DNA of 64,000 nucleotides, from contig NC_000964.3 in the NCBI RefSeq assembly GCF_000009045.1, forward strand, positions 3,162,001 through 3,226,000. The letters run 5' to 3'. Under the pieces are notes generated by a model. The model had not been told where the DNA came from and made no database searches. It saw nothing but the letters and a program-made list of their open reading frames with translations. A program made the translations under genes and the position numbers. Below, piece after piece: positions 28,431 to 32,527 of this stretch (the stretch's first letter is position 1; each line of letters begins with the position of its first letter). This DNA comes from Bacillus subtilis subsp. subtilis str. 168. GTDB lineage: Bacteria; Bacillota; Bacilli; Bacillales; Bacillaceae.

Positions 28431-28463
28431 AAAAAAATCCGGCGTGCAGTCGCCGGATTTTTT
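28431..28463. terminator. Bidirectional terminator ktrB/yubF
   Basis: A7-TCCGGCG-n5-CGCCGGA-T6. Confidence 0.85.
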
Positions 28464-28725
28464 ATGATTCGATATGAGATTGATTTTGTCTTTTTTCCTG
28501 TTCCGCGATGATTTCGTTATCCTCCGCGTTATCACGGGTCACTTTTTGCGTAAGAATCGCACCAACTGCTACAAGTATCATAACAGCGATGTAATAACCT
28601 TTTTCATTGAGTTCCAGATTATCAGCATTATAGAGTCCGATACTAAACAAAAATACTCCCGCAAAAAAAGTAAAATAAGCTAGTACTGTAAAGGCAACCG
28701 TGTTTCTGCGTCTATATTTCTGCAC
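28462..28725 (-). CDS. yubF: Small two-TM YiaA/B-like membrane protein
   Basis: 87 aa; NEKGYY and K.TRD motifs; SD GGGAGG. Confidence 0.8.
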   Translation of the reverse strand: MQKYRRRNTVAFTVLAYFTFFAGVFLFSIGLYNADNLELNEKGYYIAVMILVAVGAILTQKVTRDNAEDNEIIAEQEKRQNQSHIES

Positions 28726-28833
28726 CTTTGTTCCCTCCCGAAAGCATAGTTAAAAAGTGATAACTTCCGTGGAATATTATACCTCAAATTCCCCGGAATG
28801 GAACAAAGAATTAAAAATACCAGTAAAAAGGGC

Positions 28834-29682
28834 TTAGGTTGCCTCCTTTATTTCAACAGCTGAATCATCAATCCAGCCGATAAGTTTATCATTGATTTGG
28901 AATTGGTACCATACAGACTGGCCTTTCTGTTTTTTAGACACAACCTTTATGTCTTTGCCGACGTAAGATTGGGCAGAGGTAAGCCTTATGGACCGATCAT
29001 CAGTAGAAGGCTTGGACCATACGTCTTGAACGGCACTGTCTTTAATAGAGGCGTTTAAATCCACAGATTTGAGGGATGGATTTACCTCATCGTACTCATC
29101 TAAATCGTATTTTTCCACAATAGCGCTGATTTTGTCAGCGTAGTCAGGGTCTGTAGCATATCCTGATGTTTGCAGGGCGGTTGCCGCTTCCTTATAATTC
29201 CCTGCCTCAAGCACCGGTTTATACTTCTTTTTATTCCACGATGTGCCACGGACGAACAATTGGGCGTGATCATCCATAGATTCAAAAAACGTGCTGTATT
29301 TTCGAAACTTCGCGCGAATGGTTTTTCTTTTCCCTTTTTCAACTTCGTCCGTTTCCATCGTGACATGATGGCCTTTATAATTCCCTTTTACGCCAAAAAG
29401 GTTGTTGGCCTTAGCAGCCAGTTCACTGTTCCCCCAGTCCGATTCGAGAATGGCCTGAGCAATTGTGATGCTGGGGAGAACATGGTATTTTTCATACAAA
29501 ATTTGGGCATGTCCGGACAGACTGTCTATAAATACTTGCTGTTCATCGATTTCTTCAGTTTCTTTGGATATTTCAATCGGTTTTGATAAAGTTGTCGCTA
29601 AAACAAACAGAGCTAGCGGAATCGATACAAGGAAAAATAGTGAAATCAAGAGTTTACGTTTTTTAAGTTTTTTACGGGCCAT
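28834..29682 (-). CDS. lytG: GH73 N-acetylglucosaminidase LytG
   Basis: AQAILES.WG, NNLFGVKG, GYATDPDY; C-terminal GW repeat; start MARKK. Confidence 0.93.
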   Translation of the reverse strand: MARKKLKKRKLLISLFFLVSIPLALFVLATTLSKPIEISKETEEIDEQQVFIDSLSGHAQILYEKYHVLPSITIAQAILESDWGNSELAAKANNLFGVKGNYKGHHVTMETDEVEKGKRKTIRAKFRKYSTFFESMDDHAQLFVRGTSWNKKKYKPVLEAGNYKEAATALQTSGYATDPDYADKISAIVEKYDLDEYDEVNPSLKSVDLNASIKDSAVQDVWSKPSTDDRSIRLTSAQSYVGKDIKVVSKKQKGQSVWYQFQINDKLIGWIDDSAVEIKEAT

Positions 29683-29842
29683 GAAAACCTTCCTTCGAAT
29701 TAAAAGATTACGAATGTAAAAGAATCTACCTTTTAGAATTTTACTTGCACTTCTAATATTTTTCAATTCTTTAGGGATAAAGTTGGGAAAAGATTGCAAA
29801 ATAAAAACCTTTTCGCTCAATGAAAAGGTTTTTACCATGTTT

Positions 29843-31378
29843 CTATTTTTGTAAATTTCTGAGTGCATTCCGATATTCCGTATCATTTATTACTTTATAT
29901 GATTTGACAGTTGCCTTCGACAAACCTTGTGCTGAGACGGCCGGTTTTTCCGGAGCTGTTTTCGCTTTATCATGTGGTTTATGTGCCAGCTTGTGCCCCA
30001 TTCCAGTGGCATTCATACAAAATGACAGGCAGACGAGCAGCACGCTAAGGATAAAAGAAATGAAGAAGAGATCATGATAAGCAGTCATCATAGAATCCTG
30101 TACCGAACCGCTTTGTCTGGCAGCATCTTTTTTCGTGAAAAAGCCGATGAGAATGGGAACTCCCATATAGACAAACAATCTTAAAAACTGAACAGCTGTC
30201 ATTCTCTTGACCAAATCAGGCAGCGGGCCTCCCATGGCAGCTCCCATCAGCCCTGCGGCGACTGTCAGGCCTGTTCCCGCTGCAAGCATGATAAACAGTG
30301 CCGCGAACATATAAAGAGATGATCGATCCTGTATATGCAGCCATTGAAAATTCACAAAAACGAGAATGAGTCCGCCGATAATACCGAGCATCCCTGGTCC
30401 GACTTTATCGTATAACAGAGCGCTCAAAATGGCCGCGATCGCCACTCCGATTAAAAGAGTCAAGCTTAAAAGAATGAGATGCTCCTGAGAAATATCATAC
30501 ATTTGACGGAGCAAGCCTTGAAAAGCAGAAAGGCTGACAGCTACCGTTATCGTCCCTGCAGCTATGATCAATAAGCCGAGCACCGGTTTTGGCAGCAGCA
30601 TCAGTTTAATAGATATGAAGGGGTTTTTCACTTTATATTCCACAATCAATAGACCAATGAGCAAACATAACGTCACCCCGAAACCAATCCATACATAACC
30701 CGATGACAGCCCCCATTTTTGCAGAAAAATGAATGAAACCGCTGAGGCTGCGGCAAGGAAGACAGATAAAAGAATTCCCGCACGATCAAGCGGCTGTTCT
30801 TGATCCGCCGCTCCGTGATGCTCATCATGAAGAAAGAAATAGCTCACCGCGACACCGATCAGGGACAAGGTGCCAAAGATGAAAAACAGCCATCTCCAAT
30901 GCCCGCAGCTTGTTGCAATGGTTCCCAGGATTGTACCGATGATAACAGAACCATAGAATCCCCCGATCAGCACAAGCAGTGCATAGTTCCTGCGTTCAAT
31001 CGGGAATGACAGTACAAGCATTGGAATCATAATCATCAGCATGACGCCTGTTGCCGCCCCTTGTAAAAAGCGCCCTGCCGCCATCAATGCAATATCGCCT
31101 GAACATGCGATGAGCAGTGAGCCTAGTATAAAGACAGGTAATGAAGCCAGATAGACGGGACGAGCACCGAATTTTTTCCTCAGCAGCGGTCCTGCCGGAA
31201 CTAACAAGGCAAAGGCCATATTGCCGATCAATATCGGATTTACTGATGTAAAGACACTTGTTCCAACCGTTTTCTGAACAAGGCCTTGAACTGACGACAA
31301 TGCCGTGTTAGACATCAATCCCGGCCCGACCGCTAAGACGGCGAGCAAAGAAATCACCCAATAGTGTTTTGTCTTCAT
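29843..31378 (-). CDS. yubD: MFS (DHA2-like) transporter
   Basis: About 14 hydrophobic segments; GRFLQG motif B; WRWLF; SD GGAAGGG before ATG 31378 (frame also open from 31420). Confidence 0.85.
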   Translation of the reverse strand: MKTKHYWVISLLAVLAVGPGLMSNTALSSVQGLVQKTVGTSVFTSVNPILIGNMAFALLVPAGPLLRKKFGARPVYLASLPVFILGSLLIACSGDIALMAAGRFLQGAATGVMLMIMIPMLVLSFPIERRNYALLVLIGGFYGSVIIGTILGTIATSCGHWRWLFFIFGTLSLIGVAVSYFFLHDEHHGAADQEQPLDRAGILLSVFLAAASAVSFIFLQKWGLSSGYVWIGFGVTLCLLIGLLIVEYKVKNPFISIKLMLLPKPVLGLLIIAAGTITVAVSLSAFQGLLRQMYDISQEHLILLSLTLLIGVAIAAILSALLYDKVGPGMLGIIGGLILVFVNFQWLHIQDRSSLYMFAALFIMLAAGTGLTVAAGLMGAAMGGPLPDLVKRMTAVQFLRLFVYMGVPILIGFFTKKDAARQSGSVQDSMMTAYHDLFFISFILSVLLVCLSFCMNATGMGHKLAHKPHDKAKTAPEKPAVSAQGLSKATVKSYKVINDTEYRNALRNLQK

Positions 31379-31416
31379 GTTGTCATCCCTTCCTATATGA
31401 ATACATGCGAAACACA

Positions 31417-31470
31417 TCATTTTTTGAAAACAAAAGAAGCTAATAGATTTTGCATACCATTAGCTTTCAT
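31417..31470 (-). CDS. Putative 17-aa leader peptide MKANGMQNLLASFVFKK
   Basis: SD AAAGGGAG 9 nt before ATG 31470; the TGA overlaps ATG 31420 of the yubD frame; translated by eye. Confidence 0.4.
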   Translation of the reverse strand: MKANGMQNLLASFVFKK

Positions 31471-31847
31471 TCTAATATTCTCCCTTTCAGGGGAAATGAT
31501 ATTATTTTATTATAATTATGTGAATGAATGAGCATATAATCAAATATTATTTCAAATCGATTGTGTTTTGTCAATGGAGTAAATTTCAAGCACAACATAG
31601 AAAGCTTGAAAGCTTTTCCCCGATATTGTGTCTAGAACTGCACTTATGAATCCCTGCTCGTTCCCTCAAGCGAATTAAAGCAGGCCGTTTTAATCCTTTC
31701 AATCCACTATTCCAACTAATAAACTCAAATAAGTTGGTGATAAGACAACATTTTACCCCCACATTTTTTTGTGTTCACTGGGCGTTTGCCGCCTCTAAAT
31801 TGTATATGGGTAAATACCATGAATTAACCTATGAAATACCAATGTAA

Positions 31848-32348
<501 letters not shown>

Positions 32349-32420
32349 TTGACAGATAAACTGCTCACTTTGACTTCACTCAACTGGAGGATTCAGAGAA
32401 TGAAACCTTTTCCTCAAAAC

Positions 32421-32454: not shown

Positions 32455-32527
32455 TGGAGCCAAGGGGGCTCGAACCCCTGACCTCTACGCTGCCAGCGTA
32501 GCGCTCTCCCAGCTGAGCTATGGCCCC
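32455..32527 (-). tRNA. Stand-alone tRNA-Ala(GGC), CCA not encoded
   Basis: GGGGCCATAGCTCAG...CTACG-CTGGCAG-CGTAG...GGCTCCA; G3:U70. Confidence 0.95.

Follow-up and report, generated by a model that had tools for sequence, protein, structure and literature searches.

What controls transcription of the transporter gene yubD in Bacillus subtilis, and does its leader work as an antibiotic-sensing leader peptide? YubD is an uncharacterised MFS transporter of the 14-TMS type in a model organism. We found no open-access full text for yubD together with subtilis, nor for BSU31130, and current annotation tables enter no regulator for the gene. A first-pass annotation of the locus proposed that yubD may be induced by ribosome stalling on a short upstream open reading frame (uORF), or by a ligand that remodels the leader. 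The leader indeed shares several features with those of bmrB-bmrCD, vmlR, tlrB (yxjB) and ytbDE: a sigma-A promoter, a short leader ORF with a Shine-Dalgarno sequence (SD), and a hairpin with a U-tract ahead of a transporter gene. In strain 168 the ORF also overlaps the hairpin. The established leaders are further characterised by conserved peptides, antiterminator/anti-antiterminator folds and induction by translation inhibitors (PMC13689557, PMC4191407, PMC6851288).

We analysed a stretch of 64,000 nucleotides from B. subtilis 168 (the window; genome coordinate = window position + 3,162,000), in which all features discussed here lie on the minus strand. The ORF list and ortholog alignment place the yubD coding sequence at 29843..31378, stop codon included. 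Its 511-aa product matches MFS_1 in Pfam (E = 1.4e-23). Orthologs from the B. subtilis group share 98-62% identity with it, and those from Priestia, Paenibacillus and B. glycinifermentans 42-47%; the database contained no protein closer to that of B. glycinifermentans from which a second clade of leaders could be drawn. The true start is almost certainly the ATG at 31378-76, since an SD, AGGAAGGGA (31386..31394), lies 7 nt upstream, with AG(G/A)AAGG kept in all orthologs, and since all close orthologs share this start as ATGAAGACA. The ATG at 31420-18, which is in frame with yubD and would give a 525-aa ORF, has no SD and is not conserved among orthologs.

The promoter proposed by the first-pass annotation was recovered as described, with TTGACA at 31574-31569, a 17-nt spacer, AATAAT at 31551-31546 and a TG at 31554-53. 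In a consensus scan it scored 11/12 plus the TG and was the top site in 31000-32400. The -35 hexamer (31569..31574) was invariant in 14/14 orthologous leaders, and so was TTTGRAATAAT, which covers the extended -10 (TGaAATAAT, 31546..31554). Conservation of this sigma-A promoter thus extended over 14 species, down to 62% YubD identity. Transcription is predicted to start near 31541-31538.

The uORF, too, had been read correctly in strain 168. Its SD, AAAGGGAG, is located at 31487-31480, 9 nt before ATG 31470; the 17 codons, MKANGMQNLLASFVFKK, occupy 31417..31470 in the ORF list together with the stop, and this TGA (31419-17) overlaps ATG 31420-18. Strain 168 does therefore possess an SD-bearing short ORF (ATG 31470 to TGA 31417) that overlaps a terminator-like stem. 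The alignment of yubD leaders across Bacillus, which the first-pass annotation had suggested, revealed little conservation of this ORF. Only four of the 14 orthologous leaders carry it intact, with an identical peptide; in one it is extended, in one variant and shorter, in three frameshifted by indels in the loop of the stem, in two deprived of its ATG and in three absent. The few differences between the peptides were non-synonymous as often as synonymous, and the peptide appears to be under no purifying selection. The leader alignment contained no conserved antiterminator and no alternative partner for either arm of the stem. The uORF SD had further been placed in a second hairpin (UUUCCC-CUGAAA-GGGAGA, 31479..31496, by folding and alignment). 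The pairing of UUUCCC with GGGAGA at 31496-31479 was confirmed (-6.8 kcal/mol), but its stability was at chance level (z = -0.87, 41/200 shuffles). This small hairpin was restricted to the subtilis clade, where its changes were one-sided; B. velezensis and B. siamensis lack it, and in B. atrophaeus it is replaced. We propose that an ATG and an SD-like run lying beside the stem give rise to the uORF as a lineage-specific by-product, and that it is not the sensor.

Published data allowed us to examine the response of yubD and the 3' ends in its leader. Among the genes changed at least 2-fold after 6 h in 1 uM chloramphenicol were bmrC (+2.64 log2), ytbD (+2.56) and vmlR (+2.27), whereas yubD was not in that list (PMC10983992; one drug, 1 uM). 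At 24 h, yubD showed a non-significant change of -0.44 log2, and its baseMean without inducer was 512-867 (PMC10983992). With this single drug, the postulated induction by ribosome stalling was thus not seen where bmrC, ytbD and vmlR responded. The yubD leader accordingly departs from the bmrB-bmrCD, vmlR, tlrB and ytbDE leaders on three counts: its uORF is unconserved, its alternative fold is unconserved and it lacks a chloramphenicol induction of at least 2-fold.

Term-seq of the wild type in LB has yielded a catalogue of 1,400 terminators, all those reaching 5% termination or more (Mandell et al. 2021, PMC8060035), which is empty between the yubD 3' terminator at 3191798 and 3194419. It thus holds no leader entry and no 3' end at the leader U-tract, where the first-pass annotation had expected one; since it covers terminators of at least 5%, weaker 3' ends may escape it. 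The yubD 3' intrinsic terminator (29798..29828), identical in sequence to entry 3191798, served as an internal control. It is listed as lytG+45nt, with 83% termination that depends on NusA and NusG (PMC8060035), and because it was quantifiable in LB, yubD transcripts were present in that sample. Given these transcripts, the missing leader entry makes any termination at the hairpin no more than putative, and it may be negligible. Taken together, the lack of a catalogued 3' end and the poor conservation of the uORF count, at least partly, against the first-pass proposal.

The stem-loop itself gave a different picture. It occupies 31437..31466 by folding and alignment, with the arms AAGCUAAUGG and CUAUUAGCUU enclosing a 10-nt loop, and is followed directly by the U-rich tail CUUUUGUUUUC (31426..31436; 8 U in 11 nt). 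The first-pass annotation had paired 31466-57 with 31446-37, with one G-U, ahead of the tail at 31436-26. This pairing holds, with a slip of one nucleotide in its coordinates: the 11-nt arm should begin at 31447. The hairpin folds at -10.6 kcal/mol (z = -2.6, 4/200 shuffles as good), its computed energies ranging from -10.6 to -11.9 kcal/mol; the whole-leader fold reached z = -1.7. A terminator consensus scan missed the hairpin, whose 10-nt loop is longer than the 8 nt that the scan allows. Across the 14 leaders, nine of the ten pairs never vary and one goes from U-A to U-G, so that 100% of the cells are paired. In distant species 19-20/20 arm positions were identical, compared with 28-40% of four-fold sites (P 1e-8 to 5e-10); these sites, our neutral background for both the hairpin and the box described below, are saturated. 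Covariation supporting RNA pairing, which the first-pass annotation had proposed to look for in the alignment, was absent from the stem, the arms being conserved in sequence instead.

Indels in the hairpin were confined to the loop, whose length is 6, 7, 9, 10 or 11 nt and whose 3' part (AAAUC) is nearly invariant. The tail was U-rich in every lineage, for example CUUUUGCUUUG in B. atrophaeus and UUUCACUUUGUC in B. velezensis, and the distance from the hairpin to the yubD start codon ranged from 35 to 102 nt. The three most distant species have no uORF and keep the hairpin. The conservation pattern supports the view that the yubD leader contains a genuine cis-element under selection; the hairpin, taken with its U-tract, has the look of a weak intrinsic terminator. 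It resembles the weak NusA/NusG-dependent terminators of Mandell et al. 2021 (PMC8060035) in its A-U-rich stem, its terminal A-U pairs and its interrupted U-tract, CUUUUGUUUU, and its -10.6 kcal/mol is within the range of the catalogued terminators, where yubD's own is given as -6. In contrast to these, it is not among the 1,400 entries, and its arms are frozen where ordinary terminators drift by compensatory change, as the stem of the yubD 3' terminator does in the same set of species. A simple terminator role would leave the frozen sequence of both arms, beyond their structure, unexplained.

Several other readings of the leader were considered and set aside. RNAalifold suggested that the 5' block pairs with the yubD SD/AUG in a long-range helix, but 9-30% of shuffles gave a duplex energy as good. 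A mini-ORF running from an AUG in the 5' arm to a UAG in the 3' arm (MVCKIY) had no SD and kept its frame in one of five independent loop indels, as expected by chance. The hairpin is also not a dispersed or regulon-wide motif: of 82 matches in a metagenome pattern scan, three were yubD leaders and the rest fit chance.

A second conserved element, the 18-bp box ATGCTCATTCATTCACAT (31518..31535), lies 10 nt 3' of the -10, is palindrome-like and overlaps the predicted start region of the transcript. Between 15 and 16 of its 18 bases were kept where four-fold sites were only 28-40% identical (P about 1e-5 to 1e-6). We searched 108 loci, including about 700 kb of unrelated control sequence, for the pattern ATGYTCAWTNNTTYACAT, and found it only in yubD leaders and upstream of one Priestia tetR. 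Each of the tetR orthologs (6/6) had one related box upstream. P. endophytica has another directly ahead of its transporter gene; the inner 13 nt of this second box are those of the subtilis-clade yubD box. The spacing is alike as well, the gap from TTGACA to the box being 33-35 nt in yubD promoters versus 34 nt in Priestia tetR promoters. The transporter gene of B. glycinifermentans had no upstream box with three or fewer mismatches, though the repressor is present in that species. From its conservation and its relation to the tetR boxes, the element is probably the operator of a TetR-family (TetR_N + TetR_C_8) repressor. We rejected a leaderless ORF (MLIxSH...) that would begin with the ATG of the box: its variable sites are codon positions 1 and 2 and the third is invariant, the opposite of coding constraint. 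The first-pass annotation missed the box, which offers a simpler route to yubD induction.

TetR-family repressors control MFS efflux pumps in QacR-qacA, TetR-tetA and, in B. subtilis, LmrA-lmrB. As in these systems, a box of some 18 bp, an imperfect palindrome, overlaps the predicted transcription start of the pump gene, related boxes mark the repressor's own promoter, and the repressor is linked to the pump in Priestia, where at three loci tetR stands immediately before the transporter gene (the yubD ortholog). Outside the B. subtilis group, every YubD ortholog comes with a regulator dedicated to it, either TetR or IclR; a putative Paenibacillus IclR operator, AAGTTTMYTAATRGTGAAC, bears a loose likeness to the 5' arm of the hairpin that was too weak to use. 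Within the B. subtilis group, unlike in the known systems, the repressor gene stands apart from the pump gene. Orthologs with 72-74% identity occur in at least seven species of the group; the repressor was found in B. spizizenii, B. inaquosorum, B. cabrialesii, B. halotolerans, B. mojavensis, B. vallismortis and B. tequilensis, and also in B. glycinifermentans. In most species of the group the gene order is Amidohydro_2 <-> tetR - cotJABC, with tetR divergent from the amidohydrolase gene and away from yubD.

A further difference from the known pairs is that the repressor is seemingly missing in typical B. subtilis, B. velezensis and B. atrophaeus lineages, leaving a conserved box that is apparently an orphan. 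The 66 repressor matches included none from B. velezensis, B. siamensis or B. atrophaeus. Only one sequence labelled B. subtilis was found, on three contigs. No repressor gene was found in the 64-kb window or in the flanks of yubD, nor any tetR coding remnant in yubD leaders. These database counts, together with the yesF-cotJA region of strain 168, from which we take the repressor gene to be missing, point to its apparent absence from typical B. subtilis strains, probably including 168. The box is nonetheless kept in B. velezensis, B. siamensis and B. atrophaeus, where no repressor ortholog was seen; there it is either used by another regulator or has a second role, for instance as an RNA 5' end.

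The relatives, then, keep the promoter, the box and the hairpin and lose the uORF, which points to repressor control combined with an uncharacterised conserved hairpin rather than to an antibiotic-sensing leader peptide. Our preferred explanation, in which we place about even confidence, is repressor control through the operator plus a leader hairpin that acts independently of the uORF, the uORF not being the sensor. The near-consensus sigma-A promoter would drive transcription of yubD, and roughly the first 20 transcribed bp (31535-31518) would form the operator of the TetR-family repressor. Where present, the repressor would shut the yubD promoter until a ligand releases it. In strain 168 the box would probably be an orphan, with the promoter largely open, which fits the moderate published yubD mRNA levels. 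Between the operator and the ribosome-binding site, the 10-bp A+U-rich stem-loop, there with or without an overlapping uORF, most likely acts as an intrinsic attenuator, weak or conditional, and would limit transcription into the transporter gene; a weak attenuator independent of the uORF is our best guess for its role.

In Priestia (-13 to -16 kcal/mol) and in B. glycinifermentans (-14.5 kcal/mol), too, a functionally analogous hairpin with a U-run precedes the transporter gene and separates it from the presumed TetR-controlled promoter. The Priestia tetR-transporter intercistronic terminator and the yubD hairpin are both A-U-rich, both end in a U-run and share the stem base AAAGCU...AGCUUU. 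The two show no significant homology, however (local alignment p = 0.2-0.5), and the Priestia 5' arm lies inside the tetR coding sequence. We also rejected the yubD hairpin as a relic of that terminator, on the same alignment and the lack of a tetR coding remnant.

The strict conservation of the stem-loop could alternatively mean that it is the specific target of a factor acting in trans, namely an RNA-binding protein, a small RNA or a small-molecule ligand, which would switch termination, mRNA stability or translation and make the element a new clade-specific riboregulator. This possibility, unlikely as we judge it, draws on the freezing of both arms, unlike those of the yubD 3' terminator in the same species, on the near invariance of the 3' part of the loop, and on the persistence of the hairpin in lineages apparently without the TetR repressor. 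It also agrees with the lack of a match to any known RNA family, as an Rfam 15 search of the leader returned at best 15-19 bits (E = 2-7), far under gathering scores. Against it, the leader offers no second conserved RNA segment for an aptamer or an alternative fold, and B. velezensis has only about 25 unconserved nt between box and stem. No candidate factor was found, and no copy of the hairpin turned up beyond yubD leaders in the 108 loci or the metagenome scan; a covariance model likewise recovered no further copy, its nearest non-yubD match being an ordinary terminator. In its most specific form, which we hold only tentatively and consider improbable, the frozen stem-loop would be an undescribed riboregulator of the B. 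subtilis group that docks an unknown protein or ligand, gates read-through into yubD or its translation, and took over where the linked TetR was separated or lost.

Rather more doubtful is a post-transcriptional role without termination, in which the hairpin would be a stabiliser, a processing element or a modulator of yubD translation initiation. The missing 3' end at the U-tract despite the presence of yubD mRNA is compatible with this, and in strain 168 the U-tract can pair with yubD codons 2-4 over 11 bp (-10.7 kcal/mol), with none of 42 control gene starts as good. We rejected this pairing as functional, as changes that no second change compensates disrupt it in B. mojavensis, B. mexicanus, B. 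atrophaeus and B. velezensis. The variable distance from hairpin to start codon also argues against such a role, and a stabiliser would not need a fixed sequence.

It is quite improbable that the leader peptide operates as first suggested, with a ribosome stalled or present on uORF codons 2-11 melting the stem and permitting read-through into yubD. The arrangement in strain 168 would suit it: a uORF ribosome would cover the 5' arm, the SD is good and its 9-nt spacing favourable, and four B. subtilis loci operate in this way. The U-tract, moreover, has TTNTTT-like runs, candidates for the NusG-dependent pause sites that such runs reportedly form according to work by Yakhnin and Babitzke. Melting of the stem by a ribosome would imply that translation inhibitors induce the pump, yet yubD, unlike bmrC, vmlR and ytbD, is not induced at least 2-fold by chloramphenicol at 6 h. 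The hairpin is invariant even in the 8/14 leaders whose uORF is frameshifted, lost or absent, the uORF peptide is without purifying selection, and the leader has neither a conserved antiterminator or anti-antiterminator nor a Term-seq terminator call; the SD hairpin is at chance level.

We regard as very improbable a reading of the arms as a DNA palindrome (AAGCTAAT...ATTAGCTT) at which a second transcription factor would form a roadblock downstream of the promoter. Invariance of both arms would be expected of such a site, and the dedicated regulators of orthologs elsewhere would accord with it. The spacer between the half-sites, however, measures anything between 6 and 11 bp, a variation seldom tolerated by dimeric DNA-binding proteins, and the sole arm substitution and the fixed asymmetry of the arms are G-U pairs in RNA and mismatches in DNA. 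In addition, the tail is U-rich on the transcribed strand in every lineage, and the arms are unrelated to the TetR box. Least credible of all is an sRNA gene of about 110 nt from promoter to U-tract, with a 5' seed, the hairpin as terminator and yubD expressed by read-through: conservation of the transcribed region is highest at the 5' end and at the terminal hairpin, as is usual for base-pairing sRNAs, but the Term-seq catalogue has no 3' end at the U-tract, a DNA operator common to tetR promoters accounts better for the 5' block, and in B. velezensis the hairpin lies 20 nt from the yubD SD, with no space for another promoter.

With repressor control plus a uORF-independent hairpin as the preferred reading, yubD would leave the set of likely antibiotic-sensing leader-peptide attenuators (bmrCD, vmlR, tlrB, ytbDE), a useful removal because that list is short and actively studied. 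Current understanding is not overturned by these results. The gene gains a concrete candidate regulator, a TetR_C_8-type repressor encoded beside cotJA in B. spizizenii W23 and many relatives, together with a defined 18-bp operator, and a small stem-loop under unusually strict sequence conservation emerges as a puzzle. Our results suggest that the operator has no repressor to go with it in common laboratory strains of B. subtilis, which would be a case of regulon decay and could explain constitutive expression of yubD.

The yubD promoter, on the minus strand like the whole leader, was the top consensus match of its neighbourhood in a promoter scan (11/12 positions plus the extended TG), with a -35 TTGACA (31574-69) separated by 17 nt from an extended -10 TGaAATAAT (31554-46). 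An 18-nt block, ATGCTCATTCATTCACAT (31535-18), and an A+T-rich stretch follow, then a small hairpin (UUUCCC/GGGAGA, 31496-79) with a Shine-Dalgarno sequence as its 3' arm, and a 17-codon uORF running from ATG 31470 to TGA 31417. The uORF contains a 10-bp stem (31466-57 with 31446-37) with the tail CUUUUGUUUUC (31436-26), and AGGAAGGGA (31394-86) precedes the yubD start codon, ATG 31378, whose equivalent is used in all orthologs. The leader features described in the first-pass annotation were thus all present, apart from a 1-nt slip in an arm coordinate and the choice of start codon: ATG 31420 is indeed in frame with yubD, but it has no Shine-Dalgarno sequence and is not conserved. Folding against shuffled sequences gave the leader stem-loop -10.6 kcal/mol (z = -2.6), and the stability of the Shine-Dalgarno hairpin did not exceed chance. 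We found no description of a yubD leader in open-access text.

Matching Term-seq terminator sequences placed the window on the chromosome at window + 3,162,000 (PMC8060035), anchored by the yubF+29 nt terminator (3190433, window 28433) and the hairpin directly 3' of the yubD stop codon (3191798, window 29798). Around yubD lie yubF and lytG (minus), cdoA (plus), and tRNA-Ala, uppP and yubA (minus). The yubD 3' terminator (29798-29828, minus) is named 'lytG+45nt' in the PMC8060035 supplement, although by sequence it belongs to yubD; its termination of 83% falls to 31% when NusA is depleted and to 22% in ΔnusG (PMC8060035). The 350-aa lytG ORF (28834-29886) takes in this hairpin and is over-extended; the true start is probably the methionine of MARKKLKKRK.

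The uORF had been proposed to encode a regulatory leader peptide. We fetched 13 orthologous loci of the B. subtilis group and aligned their leaders with that of the window, and a conserved peptide function found no support: the stem-loop occurs in 14/14 leaders, the identical 17-aa peptide in 4/14 (this window, B. spizizenii TU-B-10, B. rugosus and B. halotolerans). Elsewhere the uORF lacks its stop (B. inaquosorum, 25 aa), has three substitutions and stops early (B. mexicanus), is frameshifted by loop indels of 1-4 nt (B. stercoris, where it continues into the yubD frame, B. spizizenii DV1-B-1 and Bacillus sp. N13C7), has lost its ATG (B. tequilensis, AGT; B. mojavensis, ATA) or has no comparable counterpart (B. 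atrophaeus, B. siamensis, B. velezensis). No conserved antiterminator pairing emerged from the alignment, and a long-range helix between the 5' block and the yubD Shine-Dalgarno/AUG (RNAalifold) was no stronger than in shuffled sequence. The strain 168 U-tract UUCUUUUGUUUU (31426-31437) is fully complementary to yubD codons 2-4, AAGACAAAA with its flanks (31365-31376); this 11-bp duplex (-10.7 kcal/mol) is better than at any of the window's 42 other gene starts and is peculiar to strain 168, not being kept in other species.

Published expression data also spoke against the peptide. At 6 h in 1 uM chloramphenicol, bmrC (+2.64 log2), ytbD (+2.56) and vmlR (+2.27) were induced (Liu et al., PMC10983992); a 2026 paper lists bmrCD, vmlR, tlrB and ytbDE as the B. 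subtilis uORF attenuators. The predicted induction of yubD by translation inhibitors was not borne out for chloramphenicol, the one drug covered: yubD is missing from the complete 6 h list of changes of at least 2-fold and from the portion of the full 6 h sheet with values below -0.04, and stood at -0.44 log2 (not significant) at 24 h (PMC10983992). Deletion of codY raised yubD by +1.12 log2 (2.2-fold), yubF by +1.63 and cdoA by +1.58 at 6 h (Table S3), and also raised bmrC, ytbD and vmlR (PMC10983992). The genes yubF, yubD and cdoA lie within 28462-32348.

The stem-loop was far more constant. Nine pairs are invariant and one changes from U-A to U-G, so that every pair forms in every leader, with loops of 6, 7, 9, 10 or 11 nt. 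At four-fold sites of yubD, identity to B. subtilis is only 28-30% in B. siamensis and B. velezensis, 40% in B. atrophaeus and 59% in B. halotolerans, so that neutral sites are saturated in the distant comparisons. Against this background, 19-20 of the 20 arm positions (P about 1e-8 to 5e-10) and 15-16 of the 18 block positions (P about 1e-5 to 1e-6) are identical in distant species. The yubD 3' terminator served as an internal control: in the same species its shape is kept through compensatory substitutions (AAAACCUUUUC/GAAAAGGUUUU, GCCUUUCCC/GGGAAAGG, CAAACCCUUUUC/GAAAAGGGUUUG). Because that terminator drifts by compensation whereas the leader arms do not, comparative evidence indicates a constraint on the primary sequence of the leader stem, beyond an ordinary terminator's needs. 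In an ORF-end search, yubD of B. stercoris and B. atrophaeus had anomalous downstream sequence, and B. atrophaeus offered fewer comparable four-fold sites (82 vs about 240), which suggests a frameshift, early stop or different C-terminus in these assemblies.

Motif and covariance-model searches ruled out a dispersed motif, an Rfam search of the leader returned no known family, homology to the Priestia tetR terminator was not detectable, and the hairpin is retained in leaders lacking an intact uORF. An RNA element seems likelier to us than a DNA palindrome, since loop length varies, the sole arm asymmetries are those giving G-U pairs, and all lineages have a U-rich tail on the transcribed strand. 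The hairpin would act as a weak or conditional attenuator, independent of the uORF. The expected 3' end at its U-tract was absent from the 1,400 intrinsic terminators scored at 5% termination or more in LB-grown wild type (Mandell et al. 2021, supplementary file 2, PMC8060035): nothing is scored at about 3193428, between the consecutive entries 3191798 (yubD 3') and 3194419 (after tRNA-Ala), although yubD transcripts were present, as the 83% scored at their 3' terminator shows; weaker ends are possible. This missing call, together with the frozen arm sequence, makes a factor-binding or post-transcriptional role a real alternative. In keeping with attenuation as the favoured reading, a hairpin and U-run of unrelated sequence recur before the transporter gene in Priestia (-13 to -16 kcal/mol, downstream of the TetR-controlled promoter) and B. 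glycinifermentans (U6, -14.5 kcal/mol), which suggests by analogy that these lineages share a need to limit how much transcription enters the pump gene.

The B. glycinifermentans ortholog (L015:2868-2955) has neither the TetR box nor a convincing uORF; its leader combines a 5' hairpin (AGAAGCU/AGUUUCU) with a strong terminator, GGGCGCCUUU/GAAGGCGUCU then U6, that lies 53 nt upstream of the start codon, and may be a separate attenuator. In strain 168, tRNA-Ala(GGC) (32455-32527, minus) lies upstream on the same strand as yubD, with a terminator at about 32419 (genome 3194419). Since this terminates only 42.6% of transcripts (Mandell et al. 2021, PMC8060035), more than half may continue, antisense to cdoA (31863-32348, plus), in the direction of the promoter and leader of yubD.

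At more distant YubD orthologs (42-47% identity) a dedicated regulator gene is always adjacent: in three Priestia species a TetR_N/TetR_C_8 gene sits immediately upstream, and in four Paenibacillus-type loci an IclR gene sits immediately downstream. No TetR or IclR gene adjoins yubD in the B. subtilis group or B. glycinifermentans. Across 108 fetched loci, the exact block pattern ATGYTCAWTNNTTYACAT occurred only in yubD leaders and once upstream of P. aryabhattai tetR; relaxing four positions revealed one box upstream of each tetR, in Priestia (ATGTTCATTAGTTTACAT, GTGTTTATTAATTTACAC, ATGTTTAGTAATGTACAT) and Bacillus (ATGTTCATTAATTTACAC, GTGTTTATTACTTTACAT, ATGTCTAATAGTTTACAT). A second P. endophytica box directly precedes the transporter gene and shares its inner 13 nt, TCATTTGTTCACA, with the subtilis-clade yubD box. 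A perfect TTGACA lies 34 nt upstream of the box in 3/3 Priestia tetR promoters, and 33-35 nt upstream of it in yubD promoters. From this recurrence and matching spacing we conclude that the block is a putative operator of the TetR repressor, overlapping the predicted transcription start.

An Amidohydro_2 gene is divergent from the TetR_C_8 regulator in Priestia and the B. subtilis group (fetched loci L105:2768-4630, L107:2766-4630 and L016:1062-2932) and may share a regulon with the transporter, since the box sits in the amidohydrolase/tetR intergenic region. The Paenibacillus-type homologs share an operator-like (A)AGTTTMYTAATRGTGAAC a short way 5' of the transporter gene (approximately L018:2900-2925, L102:2400-2425, L103:2465-2490 and L104:2460-2485); as these pair with IclR and their own operator-like sequence, one transporter family is coupled, across three genera, to three kinds of regulator.

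Orthologs of the Priestia TetR occur at 72-74% identity in B. tequilensis, B. halotolerans, B. vallismortis, B. spizizenii (including W23), B. mojavensis, B. inaquosorum and B. cabrialesii, and at 66% in B. glycinifermentans; none of the 66 matches came from B. velezensis, B. siamensis or B. atrophaeus. The Bacillus genes lie just upstream of cotJABC, divergent from the Amidohydro_2 gene; P. endophytica shares this divergent amidohydrolase, although its tetR is followed by the transporter gene. Only one ortholog sequence was labelled B. subtilis, on three contigs, and neither the 64-kb window nor the yubD flanks encode a homolog of this repressor. In strain 168, cotJA presumably follows directly after yesF.

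From sequence, the yubD locus is best described as a promoter under a predicted TetR operator, followed by a strictly conserved leader stem-loop, and there is a modest chance that this hairpin is something new. If the repressor is absent from strain 168, the operator there would be an orphan and yubD transcription would be expected to be constitutive, a reading that agrees with its moderate read counts (PMC10983992).
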